Part shown: positions 4,258 through 64,000 of the stretch, one piece after another
Layout: every line of letters begins with the position of its first letter
How positions within the stretch are numbered: position 1 is the stretch's first letter
Notes under the pieces: model-generated
Database searches by the model: none
What the model was told of the DNA's origin: nothing
Seen by the model: only the letters and a program-made list of their open reading frames with translations
Translations under genes and position numbers: made by a program
Origin: Hyalangium minutum
Lineage (GTDB): Bacteria; Myxococcota; Myxococcia; Myxococcales; Myxococcaceae
NCBI RefSeq assembly: GCF_000737315.1
Contig: NZ_JMCB01000001.1
Location: forward strand, 186,001-250,000
DNA length: 64,000 bases
Direction: 5' to 3'

Positions 4258-4298
4258 GCGCCGGCCGACGCCACGGAGCGAGAGAGAGGCATGATGTG

Positions 4299-41489: not shown

Positions 41490-41602
41490 GGAGGCCGCGT
41501 CATTTAACGGCTGGATTGGCTCTCGCCAAGCTTATCCATCAGGTTGGATCCCCAGGCGGACGGTGGCCTGCCTACTCCCTCGTCGAGGAGCCTCCCCATC
41601 CC

Positions 41603-48245: not shown

Positions 48246-48267
48246 CTAACAGCGGCTCGTGGGCGGC

Positions 48268-48298
48268 AACATCTCGGGATGGAAGATCCCGAGTGGTT
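48268..48298. terminator. Hairpin between convergent genes
   Basis: ctcgggat-ggaag-atcccgag (48273-48293) with flanking aac/gtt. Confidence 0.55.
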
Positions 48299-48360
48299 CC
48301 CACACATATTGGTCGATGGGCACCCAGGAGATGTATCTGAGGGGGTGTTTCTCGGCATGG

Positions 48361-49287
48361 CTACGGCAGTAGGTCGAGAAAGCGGCGCTCCCAGCGCTGG
48401 GTGTCCTCCTCGGACTGGCCGAGCATCCTTCCTCTGGGATCGCGGAAGAGCCACGGCTCCAGGACTTGAGCCAGCTCGCGGTAGGCTGGGAGCGTGTCGC
48501 CTCGCTCAATGTCGCCGGCCTCGGGCCATGCGCCCAGGGTGACGAGCACCTTGTCCCCTTCCATCTCCTGGACCGTGGTGCCGAGGCCGTGGAGCCGTGC
48601 GCGCAGCCCCGCAGCGCCTCCAAGCTGTCCCAGCACGGGCTGGCCCAGGAACGTGAGCCAGTGCGGACCTCTCACGCCGGTTCCGACCTCCCAGGAGAGG
48701 GACTCGGGCGAGTCGTAGACGTCGATGCCCGGATAGCGAAGCCAGTAACGGGCCACTTCGCGCCGGACTCCCACCAGCGCGTACTCGGCATTGAAGGACA
48801 GGCCCCCGTGCCCGGAGCAGAGGGGGAGAGGAGCAGCCAGTCCCATGGCCAGCTCTCGCACTCGCCCTGGGCCATGCTCCTCCAGGAACTCCGTGGGCAG
48901 CCAGAAAGTTGCCGCACACACCGGGCCCGGTCTGTGCCCCTCATGGAGCGCTTCAAGGTTCTTTTTGCCCCAGTAGTCGAAGCGATACCGGCTCTCGGTA
49001 TCGGAGCCGTCCCTCAACCGGATCATGGGAGACTGACTCTCACCTAGCTCTCGCCGAGTGATTTCCCAGCCCCGTTCGTCGAGCGGCTGCGGCTCTCCCT
49101 CATCATCCATGTACCAACCCAGCGCCTGCGGCCCAACGGCACGCAGGTACACCTCCAGAGAACGGAGGACGTTCTCGACGATCTGCAGGTGTGAATGACG
49201 CATGTAGAAGCTGATGCTCAGCCCCTCGCGGACCAACTCGAAGCCATTTTTGGCCCGGACACGTATCCGCGGGTAGCGCTCGCTCAT
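48361..49287 (-). CDS. DUF3396 / TsiV-like immunity protein
   Basis: FWLPTEFLEEHG, LPLCSGHGGL, RYPGIDV, GPHWLTFLG, LGAWPEAGD, RWERRF. Confidence 0.85.
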   Translation of the reverse strand: MSERYPRIRVRAKNGFELVREGLSISFYMRHSHLQIVENVLRSLEVYLRAVGPQALGWYMDDEGEPQPLDERGWEITRRELGESQSPMIRLRDGSDTESRYRFDYWGKKNLEALHEGHRPGPVCAATFWLPTEFLEEHGPGRVRELAMGLAAPLPLCSGHGGLSFNAEYALVGVRREVARYWLRYPGIDVYDSPESLSWEVGTGVRGPHWLTFLGQPVLGQLGGAAGLRARLHGLGTTVQEMEGDKVLVTLGAWPEAGDIERGDTLPAYRELAQVLEPWLFRDPRGRMLGQSEEDTQRWERRFLDLLP

Positions 49288-50141
49288 CGTGCGACTCCCA
49301 GGTGAGGTTGAACACGCGCAGGCTGCCCGCCCAGGGCTTTCCGGTACACCTCTCCCTGAGTTTTCCCTCCATGTGGACTTCCTGCTGGGTACTTTCTCCA
49401 GTCCAACGTCCTAGAGGTGTTCGCACAAGGGAACTTGTAGTCGTAGCCGTCCTGGACCCGGTGGGGCTGCCCTTCATGGATGACGATGTCGGGCTCGATG
49501 GTTCCGCGAAGCTCCGCGCTGCGTCCCTGTCTCAGCAACGTCTCCACCGCCTCGCGAGGGAGGTACTCGGCCTTGCCGGTCTCCGGGTCGACTCGGTAGC
49601 GGGGCTGGATGCTGAAGCCGCCCGGCTTCAGTTCCTGGAGCTTCTTCTCGGCACACTGAAGGGCGACGGTGTGTTGCTCCACACCCAATTGCATCGCTCG
49701 CGTGATGGGCTGCCCCTGGCTATCTGTACCGACGACCTCGTTGCACTCCTCGCGTGTGGGGGAACGCCCGAAGTGCTTGAGCATCACCTCGGAGCGTGCC
49801 GCATCCGCACACTCGGCAAGGGCTTCGTCAAGGCGGGCCTGCAGCCCAGCGTTCAGGGAGTGGCCGACTTGGATGACAGCAGCGCCCACCACACTGGCGG
49901 CGAGCACAGGTACGCTTGTCGCGGGTAGAGGAGGTGGCCCCGGGGGAGGATTGGGGACCACCCGGAGTCCTGGCGTGGGTGGGCAGTTGGCCGGGTTCCT
50001 GACGCAGGTATTCGAAACGGTGTCCGGGACTTGGGCATACTGGCGGGGGACGCCGTAGCTGGCCGTGCCACAGGCCGTGAAGAAGAGGACCGCGCTGAGT
50101 GCCCTCCACACCGCCCACCCGGATGAATCTCCTCGCTTCAT
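49284..50141 (-). CDS. Lipoprotein polymorphic toxin candidate with PD-(D/E)xK / VRR-NUC-like nuclease motif
   Basis: LFFTAC lipobox; EPDIVIH...YDYKFPC; ATGA overlap with the DUF3396 gene. Confidence 0.75.
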   Translation of the reverse strand: MKRGDSSGWAVWRALSAVLFFTACGTASYGVPRQYAQVPDTVSNTCVRNPANCPPTPGLRVVPNPPPGPPPLPATSVPVLAASVVGAAVIQVGHSLNAGLQARLDEALAECADAARSEVMLKHFGRSPTREECNEVVGTDSQGQPITRAMQLGVEQHTVALQCAEKKLQELKPGGFSIQPRYRVDPETGKAEYLPREAVETLLRQGRSAELRGTIEPDIVIHEGQPHRVQDGYDYKFPCANTSRTLDWRKYPAGSPHGGKTQGEVYRKALGGQPARVQPHLGVAR

Positions 50142-50376
50142 GGAGGGCTCCGTTCCCAAGGTTCTCGCGATTCTACCGAAGTGAGCACTGCTCCCCCGAT
50201 TCAACCAAGGGAGCAAGGATCCCCCTTCTGCGCGTCCACGTACTTGGGGCTGATGGCCACGTAGCCCACCTTCCCCGTCTTCGTCGGCGCCTCCGCCTGG
50301 AGACAATCATCAGGACGAGGCCCACCCCGTAGCCGAAGCTGATGACCCAACCCGCGTAGCAAATCCATGGCATGAA

Positions 50377-50451
50377 GAGCCAGATGCGGGAATTCTGCAC
50401 GTCCGGATCCGTGGGGAGCCCGGGGCCAGTCAGCGCCCGGGTTTACTCGAC
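50377..50451 (+). mobile_element. Group II intron 3' remnant (domains V and VI)
   Basis: D5 GAGCCAGATGCGGGAATTCTGCACGTCCGGATC (AGC triad, one stem mismatch); D6 hairpin cccggg..gc-cagtca-gc..cccggg ending ACTCGAC. Confidence 0.85.
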
Positions 50452-50455
50452 CAAT

Positions 50456-50488
50456 TCCAAGCTGCGGGTTCGATTCCTGCCGCCTCCA
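50456..50488 (+). repeat. tmRNA/tRNA 3'-end-like repeat, copy 1
   Basis: GCGGG-TTCGATT-CCTGC T-arm plus CGCCTCCA acceptor strand; 30/32 identical to the inverted copy at 60499-60530. Confidence 0.8.
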
Positions 50489-50491
50489 CTT

Positions 50492-51430
50492 TTACTCATT
50501 GGTGCCGCCCTCCAGCCGCTGACGGGCCGCCTCGCGGCGCTTCGCCCGGGCCTTGCCCGCAACTCCAAGCAGGGCCTTGTCCCGCGCCCACCGCTCGCGC
50601 GTGGGTGCGTCCACCTGAGGCCACCACTCCTCCAGTGACTTCACGAGCCGCTGGCACAGGTCCAGCGCTCCCCCCAGCGCCACGTGCACCGCCGGGGACG
50701 AGGGGTCCGCCAGCGCGAGCCCTCGAATCATCACCGCCACCGCGAGCACCTCGTCCTGCACCCGCTCGGGCCAGCCCGAGCGCCGCCCCACCTGCAGCAA
50801 CCAGCCCAGCAGCGCCGCGTGCACGTGGCAGTCCTCCACCGTCCGGAACGGCTTGAGGTACCTCGTATAGCCGTCCCCGGGCAGCACCTCGTCCGGAGAC
50901 ACCTTCACATCGGTCAGCTGCAGCTCCGCGTGGGGAACCTCCGGGACGAATGGCGTCTCGGGGAGCACGTTGAGGTGCACGCCCTCGCGGTGGGCGTCGA
51001 TCATCACCACCCGGAGCCGGTTCCGCCCCTGCTCATCCAGTCCCTCAGTGGCCACGACGAACAGTGTGTCCGCCGCCGTGCCCAACGTAACGAACCCTTT
51101 CGAGCCCGAGAGCCGCAGCGGCCCGCCGCCGTCGCCTCCGATGAGCCGGGTCTGGATGGCACTGGGATGGGCGCTCCCGGCCTCGGTCGCACAGAGCGCG
51201 GCACGGTGGTCCTTGGGCATCCCCGTGAAGAGCGAGCGCAACGCCGCGTGATACCCGGAGGCGAACGCGAACCCCAGCCGGTCCGCCCGGAACCCTCCCG
51301 CCAGCGCGAGGTCCACGGGCGACTGGAACCGGGAGGCCAGCTCAAGGTGCTGCCGCCACCATTCTTCCAGGGAGCCAAGCGTGCCTGGTTGGGGAGGCGT
51401 CGTGAGGAGGAATCGGAGGATTTCGTCCAC
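50492..51430 (-). CDS. Acyl-CoA dehydrogenase family protein
   Basis: ALCATE, LSGSKGFVT, PEVPHAEL, GDGY..YLKPFRTVED. Confidence 0.85.
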   Translation of the reverse strand: MDEILRFLLTTPPQPGTLGSLEEWWRQHLELASRFQSPVDLALAGGFRADRLGFAFASGYHAALRSLFTGMPKDHRAALCATEAGSAHPSAIQTRLIGGDGGGPLRLSGSKGFVTLGTAADTLFVVATEGLDEQGRNRLRVVMIDAHREGVHLNVLPETPFVPEVPHAELQLTDVKVSPDEVLPGDGYTRYLKPFRTVEDCHVHAALLGWLLQVGRRSGWPERVQDEVLAVAVMIRGLALADPSSPAVHVALGGALDLCQRLVKSLEEWWPQVDAPTRERWARDKALLGVAGKARAKRREAARQRLEGGTNE

Positions 51431-51505
51431 CTCCCCACTCTAAGTCATGGGAAATACTTCTTGTCCCCAAACCTCCCCATGGGGACTCTGTTGAGATGTA
51501 CGACG

Positions 51506-51535
51506 GGTTTTAACCATCGACCGGTCCGGGGGTTC
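51506..51535 (+). promoter_or_regulatory. Putative ECF promoter (TTTAACC-N16-GTTC) for the efflux operon
   Basis: Same spacing and boxes as the motif in front of the ECF sigma gene; 31 nt before the TolC ATG. Confidence 0.45.
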
Positions 51536-51566
51536 TCCTTCCAGACCTGCACGCTCGCCCAGCAAG

Positions 51567-52898
51567 ATGCCCACCTCCCCCGGCAAACCTCCTCGCAGCG
51601 CCCCGACCGCTCTGATGGTGGGGCTCCTCGCCCTGACCCTCACCCCGAGTCTCAGTGCCGCCCAGGAGGAGTCGTCGTGGGTGAGCATGACACTCGAAGA
51701 GGCGATGGACCGGGCGCTCAAAGCCAGCCCCCAGATCGTCCAAGCTCAGGGCACCATCCGCAACGCCGCAGCCTCCGAGCGAAGCGCCTTCGGGGCCTAC
51801 CTGCCCAGCCTGTCCGCCAACGCCAGCAGCTCGCTGTCCAGCACCGAGCGCCTCAACCCCACCACGGGCACCCCCGTCACCGGCTCCGCCGATTCCTACA
51901 GTGCGGGCCTCTCGGCCTCGTGGGACGTGTTCACCGGGTTCCGCCGGAAAAATGAGCGCATGCGCGCCCAGGCCGAGTCCCAGTCCGCCGAGGCCCAGCT
52001 CGTGGGCCAGCGCTTCACCGTGGAGCTCTCCGTCGCGCGCTCCTTCTTCGAGGCCCTGCGCGCCGAGGAGCTCATGACCGTGGCCAAGGCCCGCATCGAG
52101 CGCGCTCGCGAGGGCGTCGAGGCCGCCGAGCGCCGCTTGGCCGTGGGCTCGGCCACGCGCTCGGATGTGCTCCGCTCCCAGCTTGAGCTCAACACCGCCC
52201 AGGAGTCCCTGCTCCAGTTGGAGAACCAGCGCCTGACGTCAGGCCTCACCCTGGGGCGGCTCGTCGGCACCGATGGCCCCGTGGACCCGGCTCCCTCCGG
52301 TCCTCTGGAGCCCACGCCGATCCAGTCCTCGCGCGAGGACATCATCTCCAGCCTCGTCGCCCAGGCGCCTTCGGTGAAGTCCGCGGAGGCCGCCGTGCTC
52401 TCGGCCGATGCAGGTATCGGCACGGCGCGCTCGCAGTACTACCCCACCGTCCGCCTCTCCGCCGGCTATGACTGGTTCAACCAGGACTTCGGCTTCGCGG
52501 GAGGCCGGACGAGCTGGTCCGTCCGGCTCGGGGTCTCCTATCCCATCTTCGACGGCTTCCAGCGCGAGGGGGGGATGATCCGCGCGACCACTGCGGCCGA
52601 AGTCAGCCAGGCCCAGCTCCTGGACACCCGCCGCGCCGTCCGCTCCGAGGCCGAGCGGGTGATGAGCCAACTCGCTCTCTCGGAGAAGCGCGTCACCATG
52701 GCCCGGCAGGCCGTGGAGGTCGCCCAGGAGGATCTGCGCGTCCAACAGGAGCGCTATCGCCTGGGTGCCACCACCATCCTCGAGCTGCTCACCTCCCAGG
52801 CCGCCCTCGTCGAGGCCCAGAACAACCTCGTGAGCCTGCGCTTCGACTACCTGCTGTCCCGCTCCGAGCTGGAGTCCGTTCTCGGGAGGAAGCTGTGA
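51567..52898 (+). CDS. TolC family outer membrane efflux protein
   Basis: Signal peptide, [24 protein letters not shown]. Confidence 0.92.
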
Positions 52899-53608
52899 AC
52901 GCCGGCGAGCGCTCGGTCCTGGACGTGGTCATCCGCGTCGAGAGCCTGACGAAGACGTACAAGATGGGCTCGGAGGAAGTGCACGCCCTGCGCGGAGTCA
53001 ACCTGGAGATCCGCCGCAACGAGTACGTCGCCGTCATGGGCCCCTCCGGCTCCGGCAAGTCCACTTTCATGAACCTCATTGGCTGCCTGGATATCCCGAG
53101 CGGCGGCCAGTACTGGCTCAACGGCCAGCCCGTGGCGGGACTGAGCGAGGAGGCGCTGGCCCGGATACGCAACCGCGAGATCGGCTTCGTCTTCCAGAGC
53201 TTCAACCTGCTGCCCCGCGCCTCCGCGCTGGACAATGTGGCGCTGCCGCTCGTCTACGCGGGCGTGAGGAAGAGCATCCGCCGCGAGCGGGCCGCCGTGC
53301 TGCTCGACAAGGTGGGCCTCGGGGCGCGCAAGGACCACCGCCCCAACGAGATGTCCGGCGGCCAGCGCCAGCGCGTGGCCATTGCCCGGGCCCTCGTCAC
53401 CCAGCCCGCACTGCTGCTGGCGGACGAGCCCACCGGAGCGCTCGACAGCAAGACCGGCGAGGAGATCATGGCGCTCTTCGGTGAACTCCATGCCCAGGGA
53501 CAGACCTTGATGCTCGTTACCCATGAATCCGACATTGCCGAGCACGCCAAGCGCGTCCTCTTTCTCAAGGACGGCGTGATCGAGCGGGATGACCGGAAGA
53601 AAGACTGA
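52895..53608 (+). CDS. ABC transporter ATP-binding protein (MacB/LolD type)
   Basis: [44 protein letters not shown]. Confidence 0.95.
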
Positions 53609-53623
53609 ACGGGAGAGGCGCTC

Positions 53624-55117
53624 GTGAACTGGAAGAAGGTGGTCCTCATCCTCGGAGTGCTGGCCCTCGTGGGAGCGGGCGTGTACTTCGTGCGCGGCCA
53701 GGCCGCGGCGAAGACGCCTCAGCGCGAGCTGCCCACCGCCGAGGCCAAGCGCATGGACATGGAGATCGTCGCCGAGGCCTCCGGCCTGCTGGAGCCCATC
53801 CGCGTCGTGGAGGTGAAGTCGAAGGCCTCCGGTGAGGTGCTCCGCGTGCTCGTCGAGACTGGCAACGCGGTGAAGCAGGGAGACCTGCTGACGGAGATCG
53901 ATCCCCGCGACGTGCAGAACGCGCTCATCCAGGCCGAGGCGGACCTCGAGTCCGCCCAGGTCCGCATGAAGACCGTCGAGGCCCAGCGCCAGCGCATGGA
54001 GGCCCTGCGGGCCACCGGCGTCGTCACGCAGCAGGAGCTGGAGACCGCCGTGGATGCCGCCGCCACGGCCCGCGCCGCCGTCGTCCGCGCCGATACGAAC
54101 CTGCAGCTGGCCCGAGAGCGGCGCAAGGACGTGACGATCCGTGCGCCGATCGACGGCACCATCCTGGAGCGCACCATCGAGCCTGGGCAGATCATCGCCT
54201 CGGCCACCACCAACGTGTCCGGCGGCACCACGCTGTTCAAGATGGCCGACATGTCCGAGATGCAGGTCCGCACGAAGGTGGACGAGACCGACATCGGGAA
54301 GATCCGCCCCGGCCTGGAGGCGCGCGTCTCGCTGGAGGCCTACCCCAGCCGCACCTTCACCGGCGAGGTCGTCAAGATCGAGCCTCAGGCCGTGGTCGAG
54401 CAGAACGTGACGCTCTTCCCCGTGCTCATCCGCCTGAAGAACCCGGAGGGGTTGCTCAAGCCCGGGATGAACGCGGAGGTGGGTGTCCAGATCGCCAGCC
54501 GCCAGGACGTCGTCACGGTCCCCAACACGGCGGTGGTGAGCCCTCGCGAGGCAGCCACCGCGGCGTCGGCGCTCGGCCTGGACGAGGCCACGGTGCGCGC
54601 GACGCTGCGCCCATCGGGAGCTGCTCCCTCGACGGGTCCAGCCCCTGAGACGCCCGCGGCCCCGTCTCCGGAGTGCGCGGAGCTGTTCGAGCGCCTCAAG
54701 ACGGATGCGGGCCCCCCCAGCCTGTCCGACGCGGATCGCGAGAAGCTCCAGGCGTGCAGGCCCGAGGGCATGGCCGAGGGCGGTGGCCGGGGCGGACGGT
54801 TCCGCGGCGGCCAGGGCCAGCAGCGCGGAAACAACGCGGACCGGCGTCCCGGGGTGGTCTTCGTTCAGCAGCAGGACGGCAGCCCCCAGCCCCGGCGCGT
54901 CATGCTGGGCCTGAGCGACTGGGAAAACACGGAGGTCCTCAACGGCCTGGAGGCGGGCGAGAAGGTGCTCCTGGTCGCCGTGGCCCAGCTCCAGCAACAG
55001 CAGCAGCAGAGCATGGATCGGATGCGGCAGCGGGCCGGCGGCGTCATCCCCGGCGCGGGCGGCGGAGCTCGTGGCGGTGGTGGCGGTGGTGGCGGCGGTG
55101 GCGGCACCCGGAGGTAA
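53624..55117 (+). CDS. Periplasmic adaptor (MacA/HlyD type) with Gly-rich tail
   Basis: N-terminal TM, VKSKASG, IRAPIDG, VDETDIG, LKPGMNA. Confidence 0.92.
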   Translation: MNWKKVVLILGVLALVGAGVYFVRGQAAAKTPQRELPTAEAKRMDMEIVAEASGLLEPIRVVEVKSKASGEVLRVLVETGNAVKQGDLLTEIDPRDVQNALIQAEADLESAQVRMKTVEAQRQRMEALRATGVVTQQELETAVDAAATARAAVVRADTNLQLARERRKDVTIRAPIDGTILERTIEPGQIIASATTNVSGGTTLFKMADMSEMQVRTKVDETDIGKIRPGLEARVSLEAYPSRTFTGEVVKIEPQAVVEQNVTLFPVLIRLKNPEGLLKPGMNAEVGVQIASRQDVVTVPNTAVVSPREAATAASALGLDEATVRATLRPSGAAPSTGPAPETPAAPSPECAELFERLKTDAGPPSLSDADREKLQACRPEGMAEGGGRGGRFRGGQGQQRGNNADRRPGVVFVQQQDGSPQPRRVMLGLSDWENTEVLNGLEAGEKVLLVAVAQLQQQQQQSMDRMRQRAGGVIPGAGGGARGGGGGGGGGGGTRR

Positions 55118-55124
55118 CGCGGCC

Positions 55125-56336
55125 ATGATCATCTTCGAGATCCTCTGGGTGGCGCTGGACGCGATCGTCGCCAACAAGCTGCGCTCGCTGCTCACCATGC
55201 TGGGCGTCGTCATCGGCATCGCGGCGGTCATCACCATGGTGGCCCTGGGCGAGGGAGCCCAGCGCTCGGTGGAGGCCCGGCTGAAGACGCTGGGCGCCAA
55301 CGTGCTCACCGTCCGCCCCGGGCAAAGCTTCGCGGGTGGACTGGGCCGAGGCCAGGCCGCGCTCACCGCCGAGGATGCGGAGGCGCTCCGCGAGGCGCCT
55401 CAGTACATCCAGGCCGTCTCGCCCGAACTGGAGGGCCGGGTGCAGATCGAGAACGGCGCGAGCAACGCCAACATGTCCATCGTGGGCGTGTGGCCCACCT
55501 ACTTCAGCGTCAACAACTATCAGCTGTCAGACGGGCGCCTCTTCACCGAGGCGGAAGAGCGAGGCCGCCGCCGCATCGCCGTCCTGGGTGCCCTGGTGGG
55601 CTCGCAGCTCGGCGGCGTCTCGAGCGAGTCACTGGTGGGGAAGACGATCCGGATCGGCGGCGTGCCCTTCGAGGTCATCGGGGTGCTCACGGAGAAGGGC
55701 TCCCAGGGATTCTCCAATCCGGACGAGAGCCTCTACATCCCCCTGGCGACCGCGCAGTTCCGCGTCATGGGCAGTGACCGCGTGCGCTCCATCGCCGTGC
55801 AGGCCACGAGCGAGGACACCATGGATGACGCCATGGTGGAGATCGATCAGGTCCTCCGGCGCCAGCACCGGCTGCGGCCTGGGCAAGATGCGGACTTCAA
55901 CATCCGCGATCAGGCCTCGCTGCTCAGCACCGTGCAGGAGACCACGCAGACGTTCACCTTGCTGCTGGCGGGCATCGCGGCGATCTCCCTGCTGGTGGGA
56001 GGCATCGGCATCATGAACATCATGCTGGTGTCGGTGACGGAGCGCACCCGGGAGATCGGCCTGCGCAAGGCGCTGGGCGCGCGGCCCAACGACATCATGC
56101 TGCAGTTCCTCATCGAGTCGCTCGTGCTGTGCCTCGTCGGCGGCGGCCTGGGGCTGCTGCTGGGTCTGGGCGGCTCGTATGCGCTTCAGCAGCTCGCGGG
56201 GTGGCAGACGGCCGTGGCGCCCGAGTCGGTGGTGCTGGCCTTCGTGTTCTCGGGCGGCGTGGGCGTGTTCTTCGGCATCTGGCCTGCCCGGCGTGCGGCG
56301 AGCCTCACGCCGATCGAGTCTCTCCGGTACGAGTAG
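55125..56336 (+). CDS. MacB-type ABC permease
   Basis: RSLLTMLGVVIG, GGIGIMNIML, ERTREIG, ALGA, PIESLRYE. Confidence 0.95.
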   Translation: MIIFEILWVALDAIVANKLRSLLTMLGVVIGIAAVITMVALGEGAQRSVEARLKTLGANVLTVRPGQSFAGGLGRGQAALTAEDAEALREAPQYIQAVSPELEGRVQIENGASNANMSIVGVWPTYFSVNNYQLSDGRLFTEAEERGRRRIAVLGALVGSQLGGVSSESLVGKTIRIGGVPFEVIGVLTEKGSQGFSNPDESLYIPLATAQFRVMGSDRVRSIAVQATSEDTMDDAMVEIDQVLRRQHRLRPGQDADFNIRDQASLLSTVQETTQTFTLLLAGIAAISLLVGGIGIMNIMLVSVTERTREIGLRKALGARPNDIMLQFLIESLVLCLVGGGLGLLLGLGGSYALQQLAGWQTAVAPESVVLAFVFSGGVGVFFGIWPARRAASLTPIESLRYE

Positions 56337-56351
56337 CCCGCGGCCCCGCGC

Positions 56352-56990
56352 CTACGCCTGCTTGCGCGTCTTCGAGCGGGCGCCGCCCCGCGCCGTCTGC
56401 TTGCGCTGGGAGCCCTTGGCGCGGGTCTTCTTCTGCGTGCTCGCGCCCTTCTTGGCGGCCTTCTTCGCTGCCTTCCGGGCCCGCTGGGGCGGCTTGGGGG
56501 GCGCCAGGATGGTGCCCCGGCAGTCCTTCGCGCCACAGCGGCACACGTAGAGCGCCTCGGATTCCTCGTCCATGCCCTCGGCCCGCTCGTAGGCGTAGTC
56601 GTAGACGAGCTCCGTACCGGGCGAGATGTCCTTCAGGGCGTAGATGAAGATCTTGTCGCCCTCGATGAGCGCCTGGCAGTTGGGATCGCAACTGTGGTTG
56701 ATGAAGCGCGCCTCGTTGCCGTCCACCGCGGCGTCGATCACCGTGTCGTCGTCCAGGGTGAACAGGAAGGTGTGGTGGCGGCCCATGGCCTCGTCGTCGT
56801 AGCGCTTGTCCGCCTCGTCCTGAGTGATGCGCTCACCGGTGTACTCGATGATGCGCGCGCCCTTGCGGATGCGGCGCGTGGCGAAGGCGCCCCGCCCTTG
56901 GATGGGGGACTCGCGCAGCTCGAACGACAGCGGGCGACCGGTACTGGAGGGCGGGGAGGCAGAGGACTTCTTCGAGGTGGAGTCTGTCAT
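56352..56990 (-). CDS. SET-domain protein-lysine methyltransferase with post-SET Cys motif and basic tail
   Basis: SPIQGRGAFA, RFINHSCDPN, ELVYDY, CRCGAKDCRG. Confidence 0.92.
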   Translation of the reverse strand: MTDSTSKKSSASPPSSTGRPLSFELRESPIQGRGAFATRRIRKGARIIEYTGERITQDEADKRYDDEAMGRHHTFLFTLDDDTVIDAAVDGNEARFINHSCDPNCQALIEGDKIFIYALKDISPGTELVYDYAYERAEGMDEESEALYVCRCGAKDCRGTILAPPKPPQRARKAAKKAAKKGASTQKKTRAKGSQRKQTARGGARSKTRKQA

Positions 56991-57040
56991 CGATTGGTAT
57001 ACCTTGCCGCACTCGGACCTTCGATGAAAGGCGCTCGACG

Positions 57041-57412
57041 ATGCGGCTGTGGATTGTCCTGGGCGCGGTGAACGCGTTCCTCTCGGTGGCGGCAGGGGCT
57101 TTCGGCGCGCACGGGCTGAAGGCACGGCTCTCCGCGGATCTCCTCGCCATCTTCGAGACCGGGGCCCGCTACCACATGTACCACGCGCTGGGGCTCATCG
57201 CGGTGGGGCTCGTGGCGCAGGCGCGGCCTGTAGGGCTGCTCACCGGTGCGGGTGTGGCCATGTTGGCGGGGATCGTCCTCTTCTCCGGCAGCCTGTACGC
57301 ACTGGCGCTCACGGGCGTTCGCGCCCTGGGAGCCATTACTCCCCTGGGAGGCCTGGGCTTCCTGGCCGGCTGGGCCCTGCTGGCGCTGGCTGTCTGGCGC
57401 GCCGGGCCCTGA
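57041..57412 (+). CDS. DUF423 (YgdD/TMEM256) membrane protein
   Basis: GAFGAHGL, YHMYHALG, LFSGSLY, GAITPLGG. Confidence 0.92.
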   Translation: MRLWIVLGAVNAFLSVAAGAFGAHGLKARLSADLLAIFETGARYHMYHALGLIAVGLVAQARPVGLLTGAGVAMLAGIVLFSGSLYALALTGVRALGAITPLGGLGFLAGWALLALAVWRAGP

Positions 57413-57415
57413 GCC

Positions 57416-57724
57416 TCACTTCACCTTCGGAGGCATGGGGTACATCAGATCGACCTCGGCGTGGTCGAACAGGCCTATCGCCTCGCGCTGGATGATGAGG
57501 TACCAGCGCTGGTGGTCTGCCTCCGCCCAGAGCTTCTGGTACTCCTCGACCTTCTTGGCGCGCGGGGGCCCGGCGAGCGTTCGCAGCTCGGGTTCGAGCT
57601 TCACCATCTGGCCAATCAGGATCTCCAGCTTGTCCCCGACGCGCCGGAGCGCGGAAGCCTTCTCCTGGCGAATCTGGACTTCAATCGCGAGCGGTGTGCC
57701 GATCGATGAGGATGACGAGGGCAT
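57416..57724 (-). CDS. Hypothetical coiled-coil protein
   Basis: WYLIIQREAIG motif; GC3-rich ORF. Confidence 0.65.
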   Translation of the reverse strand: MPSSSSSIGTPLAIEVQIRQEKASALRRVGDKLEILIGQMVKLEPELRTLAGPPRAKKVEEYQKLWAEADHQRWYLIIQREAIGLFDHAEVDLMYPMPPKVK

Positions 57725-57733
57725 GGCGGAAAG

Positions 57734-59092
57734 CTAACGGCCCCCCGTGGGGCTGTCACCAGAGGGGGCCTCCGGAGCGGGGGCTGCCTCCTGAATTCCA
57801 TCGGTTGCGCTTATTGGCTGGGCCAGCCGAGGGAGCGAGGGCGAGGCGGGCCCGCCCGGCAGGAACGAGGCCACGGTGACGTCCTTCTGCCGCTTGCGGA
57901 GCTCCTTGTAATCCTCGATGGCCCGCTCCAGGCCCACATCCTTCTTCTCCCGCTCGGAGAGGAACCACTTGTGCTCCAGCACCTGGCAGTAGAGCTCGGA
58001 CAGCTCGGTCGCTCCTCGGACAGGCATGAGCTTCTGAACGGTCGGGTTGAAGCGCTCCTCCAACCAACGGAAGGCTGCGGTGCTCAGCGGGGTGCTGCGG
58101 TTGAGCTCGCGCGCCAGCGTGGCCTTGAGCTCCTGGATCTCGTTGAGCAGCAGCGTGGCCTGCTTCTCCTCGGCGACGATGCCCAGCAGGTTGTGGAGCT
58201 GGTGCCGGTGGTAGCTGCGGTCCGTGACGATGGTCCGCATGCGCAGGTGATCGCTCTCGCCGCTGGCCACCAGATCCACCTCCCCCACCGAGAACCCCAG
58301 GTCGTTCAGCGCGCGGATCCGCTCGTGGATGCGGTAGCTCTCGTTCGGCGCAATGGGGATCTCCTTGTTGATCTCCTCCCAGAGCCGCTCGTAGCGCTTG
58401 CGGATGGTGGGGCCGGTCTCGAAAACCTCCAGCGACGGGGGCAGCTCCACCACCGCCGCCAGATCCGCCAAACCGCCGGCGACGTTCTCCTCCATGATGT
58501 CCAGGTCGTGCAGGCGCTTGCCGTCCGACAGGTGCTCGTGCAGCTCGGAGGTCTCCGCGTCCACCGCGTAGGCCTGCAGCTCGCCCGCGTCCCGGCGGAA
58601 CAGCGTGTTGGAGAGGGAGCAGTCGCCCCAGTAGAAGCCGCCCAGGTGCAGGCGCACGAGCAGGCTGGCCATGGCGTCCAGCAGCCGCTCCCGGTAACGC
58701 TCCAAGCCCTGGTTCATGAAGAGCGTGCGGTACGGGAGCGAGCCCTCCAGGAAGCGGGTGATGAGCACGCTGCTCTCCTCCCCCTCTGAGAGCGTGGCGC
58801 TCGTGCGCGCCTTCACCAGTCCGACGGCCTCCACCGCCGGCAGCTCCCGCTCCTCGAGGCCTCGCAGCACCTCGTACTCGCGCTGGCCCACGCGCGGCGG
58901 CAGCTCCTTGAGGGCGTAGATGACCTTGCCGTAGCTGACGAAGAGCACCTCGTGGCGGGACAGACCACGCGGCACCTGGACCAGCCGGTTGCACTTCCCC
59001 TCCCACTCCGCGAGCGACAGGCTCCAGGGCAGGTCGAGGAAGTCCGGGTGCCCCTGGCGAATCTGGATGGCGGTGAGGCCGATGGGTGGCAT
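57734..59092 (-). CDS. DUF4032-containing LPS-kinase-like protein
   Basis: [43 protein letters not shown]. Confidence 0.8.
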
Positions 59093-59153
59093 GGCGTCGC
59101 TTCCCGAGAACAGTGCGTGGCGCTGCACCCCAAGCATATTCTGCCCCGCGACC

Positions 59154-60470
59154 ATGCACGCCCTCCTCCCGCTGCTTGCCCTGGCGCTCTGTCTCGCGCC
59201 CGTCACCACGCCCGCTCAGCCCTCCTCCCCTGCTGCTCCGGCTCCCGCGCCTGCCCAGCCCGCCACCCTGCTGCGCCCGGCCCGCGTCTTCGACGGGGTC
59301 TCGGCCCAGCCGCGTGAGGGTTGGGTGGTGCTCGTCAGGGGAGATCGGATCGCCGCGGTAGCGCCCGCTGCCCAGGTGAGGCCCCCCGAGGGCGCCGAGG
59401 TCATCGATCTGCCCGACACCACGCTCCTGCCCGGTCTCATCGAGGGCCACTCGCACCTGCTGCTCCACCCGTACAACGAAGCGCCCTGGAACGATCAGGT
59501 GCTCAAGGAGTCACTCGCGCTGCGCGTCGCGCGGGCCACCCAGCATGCCCGCGCTACCCTCATGGCGGGCTTCACCACGATTCGGGACCTGGGCACCGAG
59601 GGCGCTGGGGACGCGGACGTGGGACTCAAGCAGGCCATCCATCAGGGCATCATCCCCGGCCCCCGGATGAAGGTCACCACGCGGGCCCTCGTGGCCACCG
59701 GCAGCTATGGGCCCAAGGGACTCGCCGTGGAGTGGGAGGTGCCACAAGGCGCCGAGGAGGCGGATGGCGTGGACGCGCTCATCCGCGCTGTGCGGGGGCA
59801 GATCGGCCGCGGGGCGGACTGGATCAAGGTTTACGGGGACTACCGCTGGGGCCCCAAGGGTGAGGCGCGGCCCACGTACTCGGAGGCGGAGCTGCGGCTC
59901 ATCGTCGAGACGGCGCGCGACAGCGGCCGCCCGGTGGTGGTGCATGCATCCACGGCCGAGGGCATCCGCCGCGCGGTGATGGCGGGGGTGGAGACCATCG
60001 AGCACGGCGACGAGGCGACGCCCGAGGTGCTCAAGCTCATGGCCCAGCGAGGGGTAATGCTTTGCCCCACCCTCTCCGCCCAGGAGGCGAACCTGGGGTA
60101 CGGCGGGTGGAAGAAGGGCGTCAGCCCGGAGCCGGAGTCCGTGCGCAAGAAGCGCGAGGCCTTTCGCGCCGCGCTGGCCTCGGGCGTGACGATCTGCAAC
60201 GGCAGTGACTCGGGCGTCTTCGCGCACGGCGACAACGCGCGAGAGCTGGAGCTGATGGTGGAGTACGGCATGGCTCCCACGCAGGCGCTCCGGGCGGCCA
60301 CCTCCGTCAACGCGCGCATGTTGCACATGGAAGACCAGCTCGGGCAGGTAAAGGAGGGGCTGCTGGCGGACCTCGTCGCGGTGCGAGGCGATCCCACGCG
60401 CGACATTTCTACCCTGCGCCAGGTGCGGCTCGTGATGAAGGGCGGGAAGGTGTACCGCCGCGAGCCCTGA
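59154..60470 (+). CDS. Secreted metal-dependent amidohydrolase (Xaa-Pro dipeptidase-like)
   Basis: [41 protein letters not shown]. Confidence 0.9.
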
Positions 60471-60498
60471 GCTTTAACATTGATGGGATTCTCGGGAG

Positions 60499-60530
60499 GG
60501 AGGCGGCGGGAATCGAACCCGCCGCTTGGA
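60499..60530 (-). repeat. tmRNA/tRNA 3'-end-like repeat, copy 2
   Basis: Minus strand TCCAAGCGGCGGGTTCGATTCCCGCCGCCTCC. Confidence 0.8.
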
Positions 60531-60573
60531 GCTTCTGGCGAGCGCGCCTCAACTCGGTCAAGCGCGGGCCCCT

Positions 60574-60690
60574 TACCTTAGAAGAGTGCGGAGTGCTGGC
60601 CCACGGCTTCGCGCGGGTGCGGTGTGGAAGTTGTAAGGACGAACTTCTGTCGCCTTCTCATGCAAGGGGCGAAGAGTGTGCCTTCCTTGA
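60574..60690 (+). mobile_element. IS91-family transposase zinc-binding-domain remnant (frameshifted)
   Basis: ECGVLAHGFARVRCGSCKDELL / (-1 shift) VAFSCKGRRVC then stop; matches the IS91-type 'CGxLxxGFARVxCxxC..VAFSCKxRxxC' motif. Confidence 0.85.
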
Positions 60691-60743
60691 GGAAGCCCGC
60701 AAGGCCCACGCCCGCGACGAGCAGTCACAGGGTCACCAGCCCC

Positions 60744-63700
60744 TCACGGAGACCTGAGTCGGCGCCGGCGAAGCGCCAGGGCCAGTGTCAACAAAGCCCA
60801 GGTGACAGGGGACGCGGAGGCGCTGGAGCAACCCCAGCCGTAATGGCTCTGCTGGACCGCGAAGACATGATCGACGCGCTGGCTCTCATTGCCAGCCTTA
60901 TCTCTGGCGATGGTGGAGACGACATGTTTCCCGACTGCCAGATCACTCGATGGGGTGAACATCCAGACCTCCGACTCATCGACGTCAACCTCGTCCACCT
61001 TCGTCCCATTCAGCCACACCTCCACCGTGCTCTCTCGCTCGGCGGTTCCACGAATGGTAGGCCTTCTGCTGGTGGCGAATTCCCCAGGCGCAGTCACTTG
61101 GGGCTCCGCTGGCGCCAGAGAATCAATGGTGAAGTCGAACGGCTTCGAAAGAGAGCTGATATTCTTCGCCAGATCCGCAGCGGTGGCAGTGATCTGGTGG
61201 GAGCCCTCATTCAGGGCGGGGGACGGGAAGGACCAACCGCCCGACGCACTCGCAACGGCTATCCCAGCTACCTCCCCATCCACCAGCACTGTCACCGTGC
61301 TCTCGGCCTCCGCTCTCCCCGTAAAGTTTAGACTCAAGTCTTTGATGGAACCCGCGGTTGCAGTGATCTCTGGGGCTGCTGGCGCCAGCGTGTCGACCCC
61401 AAAGCTAATGGGAGCGGAGACAGGGCTGACGTTGCCCGCTGCATCCATGGAGGTGGCCGTGACCTGGTGGGGCCCGTCGAGCAGCGCCGTGGTCGGGAAG
61501 TCCCAGCCGCCTGACGCTCTCACGATGGCTGTCCCGACCACGACCCCATCTAGAGACACCGTCACCGTGCTTTCGGCCTCTGCCGTTCCGGAAATGATGG
61601 GTCCCTGAGTATTGATGAATTCCCCGAGCGTGCTCAACACAGGTGCCGCTGGCTTCGACACGTCCACCTTGAAGCTGCGGGTCGGGGAGGCAGAACCCAT
61701 ATTGCCCGCCTCATCTGCGGCGGTAGCTGTGACTTGATGGGAGCCCTCTACCAGTTCCGTGGTTGGTATGGCGGCCCAGTCTCCCGCACTGTTCGCCATA
61801 GTCTTTCCCACAATGATCCCATCCAGCGAAACCGTGACGATGCTACTTGGCTCAGCCGTCCCGACGATGATTGGCTTCCGGGCATTGACGAGGTCCCCAG
61901 GTACAGTCACCGCTGGCGCACCTGGCTCCACGGTGTCAACCACGAAGGTACGGGCTTCGGACACAGGGCTGACATTGCCTGCCGCATCCATGGCGGTGGC
62001 ATGGACCTGCTGGACGCCATCGGTCAGCCCTGTGGCAGGGGTGAAACTCCAAGCTCCTCTGACATTGGCTGTGGCTGTGCCTGCCTCCGTGCCATCCAGG
62101 AATACCGTCACCGTGCTGTCGGCCTCCGCCGTCCCTCCAAGAATGGGCGTCGGCGTGTTGACGAATGCCGGAGGCGCGCTCATCAAGGGAGCACCTGGCG
62201 GCCTGGTGTCCACCGTGAACCTGTTGGTGTTGGAGCCGAAGCTGGTGTTGCCCGCCGCATCCCGTGCCGTGGCGCTCACCGGGTGTGCGCCATCAGCCAA
62301 CGGCGTGGTCGGCGTGAAGTTCCAGTTGCCGCTGGCATTGGCCGTGGTGGTGCCCACCGGCGTGCCGTCCACGATGACCGTCACCGTGCTGCCTGGCTCG
62401 GCGGTGCCCGTGTAGTCCGGGGTGTTGTCGTTGGTGCGCGAGCCATTGGCCGGTGTCACCACCACCGGAGCCGCCGGAGGCGTGGCGTCCACGATGAACG
62501 TGTTGGTGTTGGAGCCGGGGCTGGTGTTGCCCGCCGCATCCCGTGCCGTGGCGCTCACCGGGTGTGCGCCATCGGCCAGCGATATGGTCGGCGTGAAGTT
62601 CCAGTTGCCGCTGGCATTGGCCGTGGTGGTGCCCACCAGCGTGCCGTCCACGATGACCGTCACCGTGCTGCCCGGCTCGGCAGCGGTGCCCGTGTAGTCC
62701 GGGGTGTTGTCGTTGGTGAGCGAGCCGTTGGCCGGCGTCACCACCACCGGAGCCGCCGGAGGCGTGGTGTCCACGATGAACATGTTGGTGTTGCTCGACA
62801 CGCTCTGCACACCCTCGGTCGTGTTGACAGCCACGGCGCTCACCGTGTGCGAGTCGGGCGCCAGGGGCGTCGTGGGGGTGAAGCTCCAGTTGCCAGCGGC
62901 ATCCGGCGTCGCCGAGCCCACTGTCACCCCGTCCACGATGACGGACACCGTGGTCCCCGTGGGGAACGGCTGGGCGAGCGTGCCCATGTAGGTGAGCGTC
63001 GTGTTGTTGGTCGAGGAGCCGTTGGCCGGCGTGACTACCACCGGCGCGGGCAGCACGGGGAAGCCACCGGTCAGCGTGGCCGTGGCGCCTGCGGTTCCGG
63101 GCTGCGCGCCGTAAAAGGCGCCCAGCGGAGACGAGGAGTTCGCCTGCACGCCGGCGTTCCCGGTGTTGACGGCAAAGGTCGGCAGGGCGCAGGTGCCACT
63201 CCCCTTCTGGAAGATGATACGGCCACCGCCGCCCGCGCCACCCGGACCGACGTCGAAGCCCGAGTTGGAGCTGCCGCCGTTGCCTCCAATGGCCGTGATG
63301 TTTCCGCATGTCGCAGCTGCGGCGACGCGCAGGTAGATGGTGCCGCCGCCGCCACCGCCGCTCGAACCATCCTGACCGCTGGCGTTGCCGCCCGGATCGC
63401 CGTTGGCCGACATCGACCCGGCACCCGAGATCGCTCCGACGCGGGCGAAGATGATGCCACCGCCCCGGCCACCGGCTGCGGTGCCACCCGAGGAGTGACC
63501 CGCACCGCCGCCCCCGCCCATGAGCAGGTGGTTGAACTTGCTGGAGGACGTATAGGTCAGCCCCAAGCCTCCAGTTCCTCCCACGGCCCGGCTGCCATCA
63601 TTGCTGTTACCGCCCAGGCCGCCGCCACCGACGTGAGCGCCACCACCGCCGCCCGAGCTGTCACACACGCCACCGCCACCACCGGTGGTCACATGCCCGC

Positions 63701-64000
63701 GCCCCGTAACCGAGGAGCCGTACCGGGTGAAGGCGATGCCCTCACCCTTCTGCGCTCCCTTCGGAGGAGCCTCATCCAGCCCCGTGCAGCCCACGTCGCC
63801 GCTGGCGTCCTCCACCGGCTGCCCACTGCGGAAGCCACGGCCCGCGGCGTTGAGAGCGGGAATGCCCCCGCTGGTCATCAAGGTCCCCGAGACCAGGAAG
63901 GCCAGCACGCCGCCGGTGCTACCATCCCACATAGAGGGGGCAAGGCTGCGGGCAGCCGGGATGGTGAGGTTGAGGTACTCGGGCACCCGGACGACCTGGG
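60744..64000 (-). CDS. Large surface protein (AgmC-like) with Gly-rich region, bacterial Ig-like repeats and MYXO-CTERM sorting signal; starts beyond the window
   Basis: Repeated 'P..P.V..P..TP.I.GTAE..STVTV.LDG..G...A...G.W..TP..L..G.H.V.ATA.D.AGN.S' units; GWGC + TM + RRRR C-terminus. Confidence 0.85.
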   Translation of the reverse strand, partial: QVVRVPEYLNLTIPAARSLAPSMWDGSTGGVLAFLVSGTLMTSGGIPALNAAGRGFRSGQPVEDASGDVGCTGLDEAPPKGAQKGEGIAFTRYGSSVTGRGHVTTGGGGGVCDSSGGGGGAHVGGGGLGGNSNDGSRAVGGTGGLGLTYTSSSKFNHLLMGGGGGAGHSSGGTAAGGRGGGIIFARVGAISGAGSMSANGDPGGNASGQDGSSGGGGGGTIYLRVAAAATCGNITAIGGNGGSSNSGFDVGPGGAGGGGRIIFQKGSGTCALPTFAVNTGNAGVQANSSSPLGAFYGAQPGTAGATATLTGGFPVLPAPVVVTPANGSSTNNTTLTYMGTLAQPFPTGTTVSVIVDGVTVGSATPDAAGNWSFTPTTPLAPDSHTVSAVAVNTTEGVQSVSSNTNMFIVDTTPPAAPVVVTPANGSLTNDNTPDYTGTAAEPGSTVTVIVDGTLVGTTTANASGNWNFTPTISLADGAHPVSATARDAAGNTSPGSNTNTFIVDATPPAAPVVVTPANGSRTNDNTPDYTGTAEPGSTVTVIVDGTPVGTTTANASGNWNFTPTTPLADGAHPVSATARDAAGNTSFGSNTNRFTVDTRPPGAPLMSAPPAFVNTPTPILGGTAEADSTVTVFLDGTEAGTATANVRGAWSFTPATGLTDGVQQVHATAMDAAGNVSPVSEARTFVVDTVEPGAPAVTVPGDLVNARKPIIVGTAEPSSIVTVSLDGIIVGKTMANSAGDWAAIPTTELVEGSHQVTATAADEAGNMGSASPTRSFKVDVSKPAAPVLSTLGEFINTQGPIISGTAEAESTVTVSLDGVVVGTAIVRASGGWDFPTTALLDGPHQVTATSMDAAGNVSPVSAPISFGVDTLAPAAPEITATAGSIKDLSLNFTGRAEAESTVTVLVDGEVAGIAVASASGGWSFPSPALNEGSHQITATAADLAKNISSLSKPFDFTIDSLAPAEPQVTAPGEFATSRRPTIRGTAERESTVEVWLNGTKVDEVDVDESEVWMFTPSSDLAVGKHVVSTIARDKAGNESQRVDHVFAVQQSHYGWGCSSASASPVTWALLTLALALRRRRLRSP
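62205..62790 (-). repeat. Two near-identical ~280-bp Ig-like repeat units
   Basis: gtgtagtccgggg recurs at 62410 and 62692 (282-nt period); protein units differ at few residues. Confidence 0.85.

Follow-up and report, generated by a model that had tools for sequence, protein, structure and literature searches.

tmRNA 3'-end sequences at the transposase-proximal side of IS91-family relics in Hyalangium minutum and other myxobacteria

A 64,000-nucleotide (nt) stretch of the Hyalangium minutum genome (NCBI RefSeq assembly GCF_000737315.1, contig NZ_JMCB01000001.1, positions 186,001 to 250,000; hereafter the window) contains two inverted copies of a 32-nt sequence, the core of which is the 3' end of transfer-messenger RNA (tmRNA; gene ssrA), comprising the T-arm and the 3' acceptor strand. 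IS91 elements are rolling-circle insertion sequences (IS) of the HUH/Y2 type, and in myxobacterial IS91-family relics that retain the transposase 5' end the same 24-27 nt sit 200-330 nt upstream of the transposase gene, antisense to the transposase, with DNA outside the fragment that is unrelated from locus to locus. The two repeats in the window are probably the transposase-proximal (terIS-side) tips of two independent, dead insertions of one IS91 subfamily. One of them lies at the border of a 2.25-kb insertion that carries a sitA/sitI-like toxin-immunity gene pair.

The tmRNA 3' end and its position beside IS91 transposases

The 24-nt core, GGAGGCGGCRGGAATCGAACCCGC, has exactly two matches in the window, at 50464-50487 (- strand) and 60499-60522 (+ strand), and it had matches in none of 100 shuffles. 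A repeat finder gave a longer, 32-nt inverted repeat for the pair (50456-50487 and 60499-60530; 94% complementary, 30/32) with a spacing of 10,011 nt, in agreement with a preliminary description of the window that had noted the twin tmRNA-3'-like sequence. When the surroundings of both copies were aligned, no homology was found past the 32 nt. A motif scan of one genome per species returned at least 120 stretches and, among the matches listed, the motif formed the last 24 nt of a tmRNA called by ARAGORN in nearly all loci, from Verrucomicrobia to Actinomycetota. Genuine tmRNA genes read ...tttcGGAC-GCGGGTTCGATTCCCGCCGCCTCCA-cca, and GGAC, which is GTCC in antisense, directly preceded the motif in 105 of 125 instances. 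The window holds only the last 24-25 nt of a tmRNA gene, without the tRNA-like domain or tag frame; ARAGORN called no tRNA or tmRNA gene in the 64 kb, and Rfam gave no match at the gathering score. Both copies carry TCCAAGCN, eight non-tmRNA bases, directly before GCGGG and inward of the T-arm. Therefore, one common element type, and not ssrA directly, is their source. Among the matches listed, orphan copies of the motif outside tmRNA genes were concentrated in Archangium and Hyalangium. Viral contigs gave at least 120 matches to the plain tmRNA motif, with 88 of the 120 listed continuing with GTCC, and no match to the IS-specific junction CCCGC+CGC.

The position of the fragment was examined in relics picked by IS91 protein similarity alone and with an intact transposase 5' end, which makes the test unbiased with respect to the motif. 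All three such loci carry the fragment upstream of the transposase in the predicted orientation and with 0-1 mismatch: at 284 nt from the open reading frame (ORF) in A. lansingense (P0004, locus L131), 280 nt in M. xanthus (P0148, L132), and 201 nt in a metagenome (P0138, L134). The same layout is seen in L127, L129, and L076, which were found by way of the motif, so that the arrangement holds for 6/6 loci with a surviving transposase 5' end. These results support the earlier suggestion that an IS91-like element ends, on its outer side, in the tmRNA-like T-arm; the plural "termini" used there goes too far, as only the transposase-proximal end is known. The 5'-truncated relics L122:9440, L133, L135, and L137 were uninformative for fragment position. 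In a metagenome scan with the fragment plus six IS-specific bases, four loci were found, none of them inside a tmRNA gene.

Aligned, these loci share the order variable flank, (A)GT-GGAGGCGGCGGGAATCGAACCCGC, leader (the untranslated sequence from tip to transposase gene), conserved block CCCACCAGTAGCGTGTGCCCTGGCGAGGTGTGGCTGGGGAGGG, and transposase start (..YRRRRPEGTVLYEAVRD..), with a short (~165 nt) and a long (~330 nt) form of the leader. L128, copy 2 of the window, and L122:19508 are deletion variants of this layout. Pairwise identity averages 0.98 across the fragment, compared with 0.54-0.67 for the leader and the 5' part of the transposase gene and 0.34 for the DNA outside, and identity extends through the whole fragment to one common outer base at no fewer than eight unrelated sites. 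For instance, the tip in L131 lies 17 nt from the stop codon of an AIPR gene. A perfect 8-bp palindrome lies 4 nt from this tip, which is common to at least eight loci with unrelated outer flanks. In IS91, terIS forms the left end ahead of the transposase gene and has a single subterminal palindrome beside the cleavage site (PMC13181058); the palindrome-bearing fragment may thus represent terIS. In more distant IS91 relatives the fragment is absent (L138 and L139, 61-66% identity; L136, 40%).

Copy 2 begins 28 nt past the stop codon of an amidohydrolase gene and retains the tip, ~70 nt of leader, and, inward of these, a scrap of the transposase Zn finger, GFARVRCGSCKDELL, beyond which lies a convergent gene for a Big_13 repeat protein. 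Its 8-bp subterminal palindrome, GCGGCGGG-AATCGAA-CCCGCCGC, is perfect, lies 4 nt from the tip, and is completed by three IS-specific bases; the hairpin is present in both the minimum-energy and centroid folds. Identity is 91% between 60499-60565 and L134, 89% between 60495-60575 and L129, 98% between 60498-60547 and L130, and 81% between 60499-60567 and an ssrA-linked copy in H. versicolor, and the L134 transposase region matches 60584-60668 at 89.5% identity. As a query, the Zn-finger scrap retrieved only short PF14319 proteins, all myxobacterial, which bears out the IS91 transposase remnant of the preliminary description. A transposase start ~45 bp from the end, as given there, does not hold, since intact relatives have a leader of 200-330 nt and ~50 more codons; the consensus N-terminus of the homologs has ~50 residues ahead of ECGVLAHGFARVRC. 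Copy 2 is therefore internally deleted, with ~250 nt of leader and the first ~50 transposase codons missing, and the remnant is cut off after the Zn finger. In H. gracile, a different gene lies downstream of the amidohydrolase gene and the fragment is absent. Therefore, copy 2 is located at a synteny breakpoint.

Copy 1 retains 32 nt, and its tip is 4 nt from the stop codon of an acyl-CoA-dehydrogenase-like (ACAD-like) gene. It shares 92-94% identity with the ends in L134, L129, and L127; its palindrome has decayed by two substitutions and the predicted hairpin is weak. Both tips point from outside at the 10-kb block between them, of which ~9 kb are core genes (OEP, ABC ATPase, HlyD, MacB, SET, DUF423, DUF4032 kinase, and amidohydrolase). 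A composite or inverted transposon formed by this block was considered and rejected, as the block is syntenic in three Hyalangium relatives, where the part from ACAD to the DUF4032 kinase is contiguous with DUF8299/M18.

A second H. minutum contig (L122, JMCB01000010.1) holds two further copies of the fragment. The one at L122:19508 has a partial Rfam tmRNA match (24 bits) and was considered as the true H. minutum ssrA, which was rejected: it is the left end of an IS91 element with part of the leader deleted, its inner flank consisting of IS91 leader and transposase start, and the conserved tmRNA body is lacking. The other (14869-14892) is a half-copy that keeps only TTCGATTCCCGCCGCCTCCA and has other sequence in place of the inner T-stem. 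The full IS91-end copy is found 4.6 kb away in the same orientation, and the half-copy could be a product of recombination within the T-loop. On the same contig (1347-5063), a few kb from another IS91 relic, a DUF6310 + DUF5953 gene pair occurs twice, once intact and once in fragments; these genes may be another polymorphic two-gene cassette family.

IS91 fragments form 873 clusters, several per genome, and the best 120 of the 873 are at most 250 amino acids (aa) long. In an exhaustive search, the closest representatives had at most 336 aa, and proteins of intact length were found only at 60% identity or less. Longer relics contain PF04986 in addition to PF14319; all are fragments, and the relics end at different frameshifts. 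They span Hyalangium, Archangium, Cystobacter, Corallococcus, Pyxidicoccus, and Myxococcus, and every close copy seen is a pseudogene.

The sitA/sitI insertion and its borders

Features of the window that relate to the two copies and to the insertion beside copy 1 are listed in Table 1. Loci for comparison were reached through orthologs of the ACAD-like gene. In Hyalangium sp. (L124 and L125) and H. rubrum (L126), the stop codons of the ACAD and DUF8299 genes are 14-27 nt apart, and no fragment was found at these empty sites even with 6 mismatches allowed. Therefore, 48246-50491 is an insertion specific to H. minutum. The preliminary description had named toxin-free orthologous loci that keep the motif as evidence that would speak against its proposal; these three loci do not keep it. 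The insertion is made up of sitI, sitA, the sitA upstream region, a group II intron relic, and copy 1, and its GC content is 64.5%, compared with 68.4% for the window. The last ~6 codons and stop of the ACAD-like gene (50492-50520) differ between species when compared with L124 and L126, as does the DUF8299 stop. The whole intergenic spacer has been replaced in H. minutum, and the insertion junctions can therefore not be fixed to the base. At the same position, H. gracile (L123, 10928-15731) has an unrelated 4.8-kb insert with a Ser/Thr kinase and a PEGA/Plug protein and without any IS91 or tmRNA-like trace. The ACAD/DUF8299 spacer is therefore a recurrent insertion hotspot.

Table 1. Features of the two IS91-family relics and of the 2.25-kb insertion (window coordinates)
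Feature	Position	Strand	Basis or content
H. minutum-specific insertion, 2.25 kb	48246..50491	.	Convergent spacer between DUF8299 gene (+, ends 48245) and ACAD-like gene (-)
Perfect 8-bp hairpin ctcgggat / atcccgag	48273..48293	.	Downstream of sitI; GTTC at 48296-48299
sitI-like immunity gene, 308 aa	48361..49287	-	Pfam TsiV PF11876 (former DUF3396), E = 5.4e-57, full profile
sitA-like lipoprotein toxin candidate, 285 aa from MKRGD...	49284..50141	-	ORF translation
Probable group II intron 3' end relic (domains V-VI)	50375..50455	+	Rfam RF00029, match 50375-50451
Putative IS91-family terminus, copy 1	50456..50488	-	Antisense ssrA 3' end + 8 nt IS-specific leader (AGCTTGGA)
Putative IS91-family terminus, copy 2	60499..60530	+	Antisense ssrA 3' end + three IS-specific bases
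IS91 leader remnant	60531..60567	+	Identity to other loci
IS91 transposase Zn-binding domain remnant (..ECGVLAHGFARVRCGSCKDELL..)	60578..60690	+	tblastn, PF14319 homologs

The far border of the insertion was examined for a second IS end. The preliminary description had let the element end at a hairpin followed by GTTC; both exist, but comparison with the empty sites places the border 50 nt beyond the GTTC. The GTTC is therefore internal to the insertion, and given how copy 1 is oriented it is also on the wrong strand. No IS91 sequence was found at this border by tblastn or blastn, and a terminator/promoter consensus scan of the insertion, including the hairpin, called none. The borders of 48246-50491 show no direct repeat, which is a weak test of target-site duplication given that the right end is undefined.

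The stop codon of the sitA-like ORF overlaps the sitI start at 49284-49287. The DUF3396 immunity gene of the preliminary description is confirmed by its profile match, and the sitA-like ORF has a lipoprotein signal, MKRGDSSGWAVWRALSAVLFFTAC, with the lipobox FFTAC followed by G. At the C-terminus is a PD...D-x-K-like motif (EPDIVIH...DGYDYKF), and no Pfam, NCBIfam, or PDB family match was obtained for the protein. Thus, in the lipoprotein nuclease toxin described previously, the lipoprotein signal can be read, but the toxin domain has no family match; a nuclease function is suggested by the PD..D-x-K-like motif and by the VRR-NUC-linked family of the partner immunity protein. The deposited gene model (L001, 9381-10004) is a 207-aa ORF without the lipoprotein signal, and the longer ORF from MKRGD has the lipobox. 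GC at third codon positions is 0.73 for sitA and 0.78 for sitI, compared with 0.88-0.91 for neighbouring core genes.

An upstream region of ~230 nt separates the sitA-like ORF from the intron relic. The match to RF00029 covers model positions 1-77 (full length) and is sub-threshold (28.4 bits versus a gathering score of 40; E = 0.034), and on this basis 50375-50455 is probably the relic of a group II intron 3' end. It stops exactly at the start of the IS91 leader homology, 8 nt inside the palindrome. Apparently, the IS91 left end had been invaded by a group II intron. No remnants of an intron-encoded protein were seen near the stub, and no second case of an intron in an IS91 end was found in 15 related loci.

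Elsewhere in the window, a gene for a very long (~1770 aa) UvrA-domain protein (36192-41531, -) is located upstream of a TonB-dependent receptor gene and is kept in H. rubrum (L126). The large gene beyond copy 2 (60744-63986, -) encodes a Big_13/Big_6 Ig-repeat protein and has tandem DNA repeats of ~270-285 nt. GC content is markedly lower (0.60-0.65) in 60600-62200.

Proposed origin of the terminus and alternative explanations

In this subfamily, the outermost 24-27 nt match the ssrA 3' end in antisense, and they would have been acquired by a lengthening of the element at its own terminus. The target tetranucleotides of IS91, which are CTTG, GTTC, and also GTCC, adjoin oriIS, and failure of termination at terIS mobilises adjoining DNA (PMC13181058). 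An ancestral element may have inserted into ssrA-type DNA beside GTCC, the tetranucleotide right after the antisense T-arm; insertion 5' of GTCC would set terIS against the T-arm, and one-ended transposition, by read-through of the element's own terminus, would capture the last ~27 nt of ssrA. The tmRNA identity stops exactly at ...GAACCCGC, where genuine tmRNA goes on with GTCC in antisense. The hairpin of the ssrA tail would resemble the terIS palindrome, with three IS bases making a perfect 8-bp stem. The lengthened element would then have proliferated and later decayed. In copy 1, a group II intron would have invaded 8 nt inside the palindrome, most of both elements would have been lost later, and the copy 1 tip would have ended up as one border of the 2.25-kb sitA/sitI insertion of foreign composition. 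We infer the capture step from the sequences, and the same applies to any role of an IS in moving the sitA/sitI pair.

Several observations weigh against this scenario. In H. versicolor (L054, NZ_JAHXBF010000010.1) and Archangium sp. L076, the fragment continues outward for ~130 nt into the native ssrA terminator region. The H. versicolor locus (3869-5661) consists of an intact tmRNA gene followed by a 1.4-kb mini-island with a 144-aa lipoprotein gene, a 198-aa gene without Pfam match, and 190 nt of IS91 leader, which is flanked by ~130-nt direct repeats of ssrA tail, terminator, and downstream sequence; L076 is similar. It may be that the native ssrA context survives at these two loci or was restored there by recombination. 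Additionally, tyrosine integrase genes lie right outside the fragment in L043 and L097 (Archangium), with a remnant at this place in L134, and ssrA-specific integrases might use fragments that are borne by an IS. Copy 1 is flanked on its outer side by ACTTTTAC, a sequence similar to that on the integrase side of L043 and L134, and its border may therefore not be a clean IS tip. The contexts of L054, L076, and the integrase loci could also have arisen by recombination at ssrA-type attachment (att) sites or by site-specific insertion into them. Half of the supporting loci were found via the motif itself, and neither an intact close copy nor a right (oriIS) end was found in six locus look-ups among the longest relics and in a scan of viral contigs, which gave truncated copies throughout.

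In L043, L097, and L134 (5553-5756), the integrase ends 20-100 nt outside the fragment, and the flank ACTTTTTTA is common to these loci; in L134 this arrangement lies directly against an IS91 left end.

It appears unlikely that the 2.25-kb block moved in one rolling-circle event as a non-autonomous IS91 derivative consisting of terIS tip, sitA/sitI, and oriIS, and that such derivatives spread toxin-immunity cassettes, as the preliminary description had proposed. In favour of this, the IS tip adjoins core DNA, three related loci lack the entire block, the pair is of foreign composition, and the H. versicolor lipoprotein gene and its neighbour lie beside a truncated IS91 left end at ssrA. Similarly, sitA loci outside Mx-alpha are usually beside other mobile elements (PMC5562445; PMC10047993). 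However, no oriIS-like end or IS91 sequence is present near 48246-48360, and neither GAAC nor CAAG occurs on the + strand at the 48246 border. One-ended capture takes DNA outside terIS, whereas sitA/sitI lies inside, with the intron relic between the tip and sitA. Moreover, the unrelated insert of H. gracile in the same spacer indicates a hotspot in its own right. Other relics have mixed neighbours, with defence, toxin-like, and housekeeping genes but no further TsiV pair; the pair in the window is the only one found beside a relic, and the general spread of cassettes proposed earlier is not borne out. Carriage of the pair by an IS91 derivative is unproven.

Site-specific targeting, in which each IS91 copy inserted beside GTCC at a pre-existing copy of the ssrA 3' end and the fragment is target DNA, is quite unlikely. 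The junction is exactly the CCCGC|GTCC of antisense tmRNA, and GTCC is a used target of the IS91 family. The pre-existing copies could be the gene or att remnants that ssrA-specific integrative elements left behind: the second L054 copy and L076 keep native ssrA downstream sequence outside, and L134, L043, and L097 have an integrase-side arm outside the fragment. The 98% conservation of the fragment, as opposed to the diverged leader, is also what would be expected of fresh host-derived target DNA. Yet known IS91 members recognise a tetranucleotide only (PMC13181058), and many loci would need a prior event that left just a 25-nt ssrA tail against ordinary genes (4, 28, and 17 nt from stop codons). 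The empty sites of relatives, in addition, are without any ssrA tail.

The 3' ends of ssrA are classic integration sites, and the fragment could instead be the att core of ssrA-targeting integrative elements that a tyrosine integrase moves, with the crossover at its outer edge, the IS91 relic being a dead passenger in the arm. This explanation is consistent with the viral contigs that bear the motif (at least 120), with the intact tmRNA gene of H. versicolor and the second copy that bounds its mini-island by ~130-nt direct repeats, and with the integrase genes that adjoin the fragment in L043, L097, and L134. A protein on a 1129-nt metagenome contig (P0165) fuses an IS91 N-terminal fragment to a XerC/D-type tyrosine recombinase C-terminus, which places an IS91 relic immediately beside a recombinase gene. 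It is nevertheless distinctly improbable. In the window, tblastn with the L043 integrase, which gave matches in L097 and L134, found no homolog; the window also has no tmRNA gene, and its two copies are inverted, not direct. At eight or more unrelated sites, moreover, identity covers the entire fragment and reaches one common outer base. Finally, there are hundreds of IS91 fragments with differing truncation points and two leader lengths; proliferation of an IS therefore fits these multi-copy, differently truncated fragments better than one passenger does. Both targeting and att relics are disfavoured because genes lie 4-28 nt from the tip, empty sites are free of the fragment, and the many copies are differently decayed.

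Independent decay of ssrA into chance or degenerate tmRNA pseudogenes without an IS91 link has a negligible probability, since, although the sequence is identical to the tmRNA 3' end, the copies share eight non-tmRNA bases, copy 2 shares ~70 nt with IS91 leaders of other genomes, and no chance match is expected.

A further conjecture, to which only a small chance is given, starts from IS91 tips as the source of the fragments. Dispersed tips, each with a perfect ssrA attachment core, would act as portable decoy attB sites that recruit ssrA-specific integrases and their cargo, toxin-immunity cassettes included, to many places on the chromosome. If true, the movement of a rolling-circle IS and the site-specific traffic of islands would be coupled, which could account for integrases that adjoin IS-borne fragments and for small cassettes bounded by them.

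Implications and comparison with known systems

If capture of the ssrA tail took place as proposed, it would be a clear natural case of an IS91-type element making captured host DNA its own terminus. The tmRNA tail would have provided a universally conserved, ready-made hairpin, and one-ended transposition would be seen to remodel ends and not cargo alone. Capture would also explain the orphan "tmRNA 3' ends" across myxobacterial chromosomes, which are mistakable for att sites of islands, and cross-talk of IS91 tips with ssrA-specific integrases is possible. With respect to kin discrimination, one sitA/sitI cassette is placed at a recurrent insertion hotspot beside IS91 debris, which does not by itself give the mechanism of its transfer.

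The relics resemble the IS91 family (IS91, IS801, IS1294, and ISCR) in the N-terminal Zn-binding PF14319 domain, followed by the Y2 domain PF04986 in longer relics, and in the subterminal palindrome a few bases from the tip upstream of the transposase, without terminal inverted repeats. The proposed origin uses a documented target tetranucleotide at oriIS and one-ended capture beyond terIS (PMC13181058). In contrast to the known members, the tip is the verbatim end of a host structural-RNA gene (ssrA T-arm and acceptor strand), and all close copies seen are pseudogenes. In the literature on IS91 with tmRNA, incidental co-mentions and no description of such an end were found.

Islands and prophages integrated at ssrA by tyrosine integrases have the same duplicated ssrA 3' segment, and related genomes show the corresponding features, namely the tmRNA gene with direct repeat in L054 and the integrases beside the block in L043, L097, and L134. 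However, the window has no tmRNA gene, integrase, or direct repeat, and at many loci the block is fixed to the IS91 leader on one side and to unrelated DNA on the other.

The gene pair resembles the SitA/SitI outer-membrane-exchange systems of myxobacteria in its lipoprotein ORF, the overlapping immunity gene of the polymorphic-toxin immunity family TsiV/DUF3396, its foreign composition, and its presence or absence between close species, and it adjoins mobile-element debris, as do sitA loci outside Mx-alpha (PMC5562445). It differs in that the toxin domain has no profile match and no sitB gene is present. Finally, ISCR-type capture follows the same logic of terminus read-through that is proposed here for the ssrA tail, but with a different outcome: the captured piece of ~27 nt would have become the new tip of the element and not a cargo gene.

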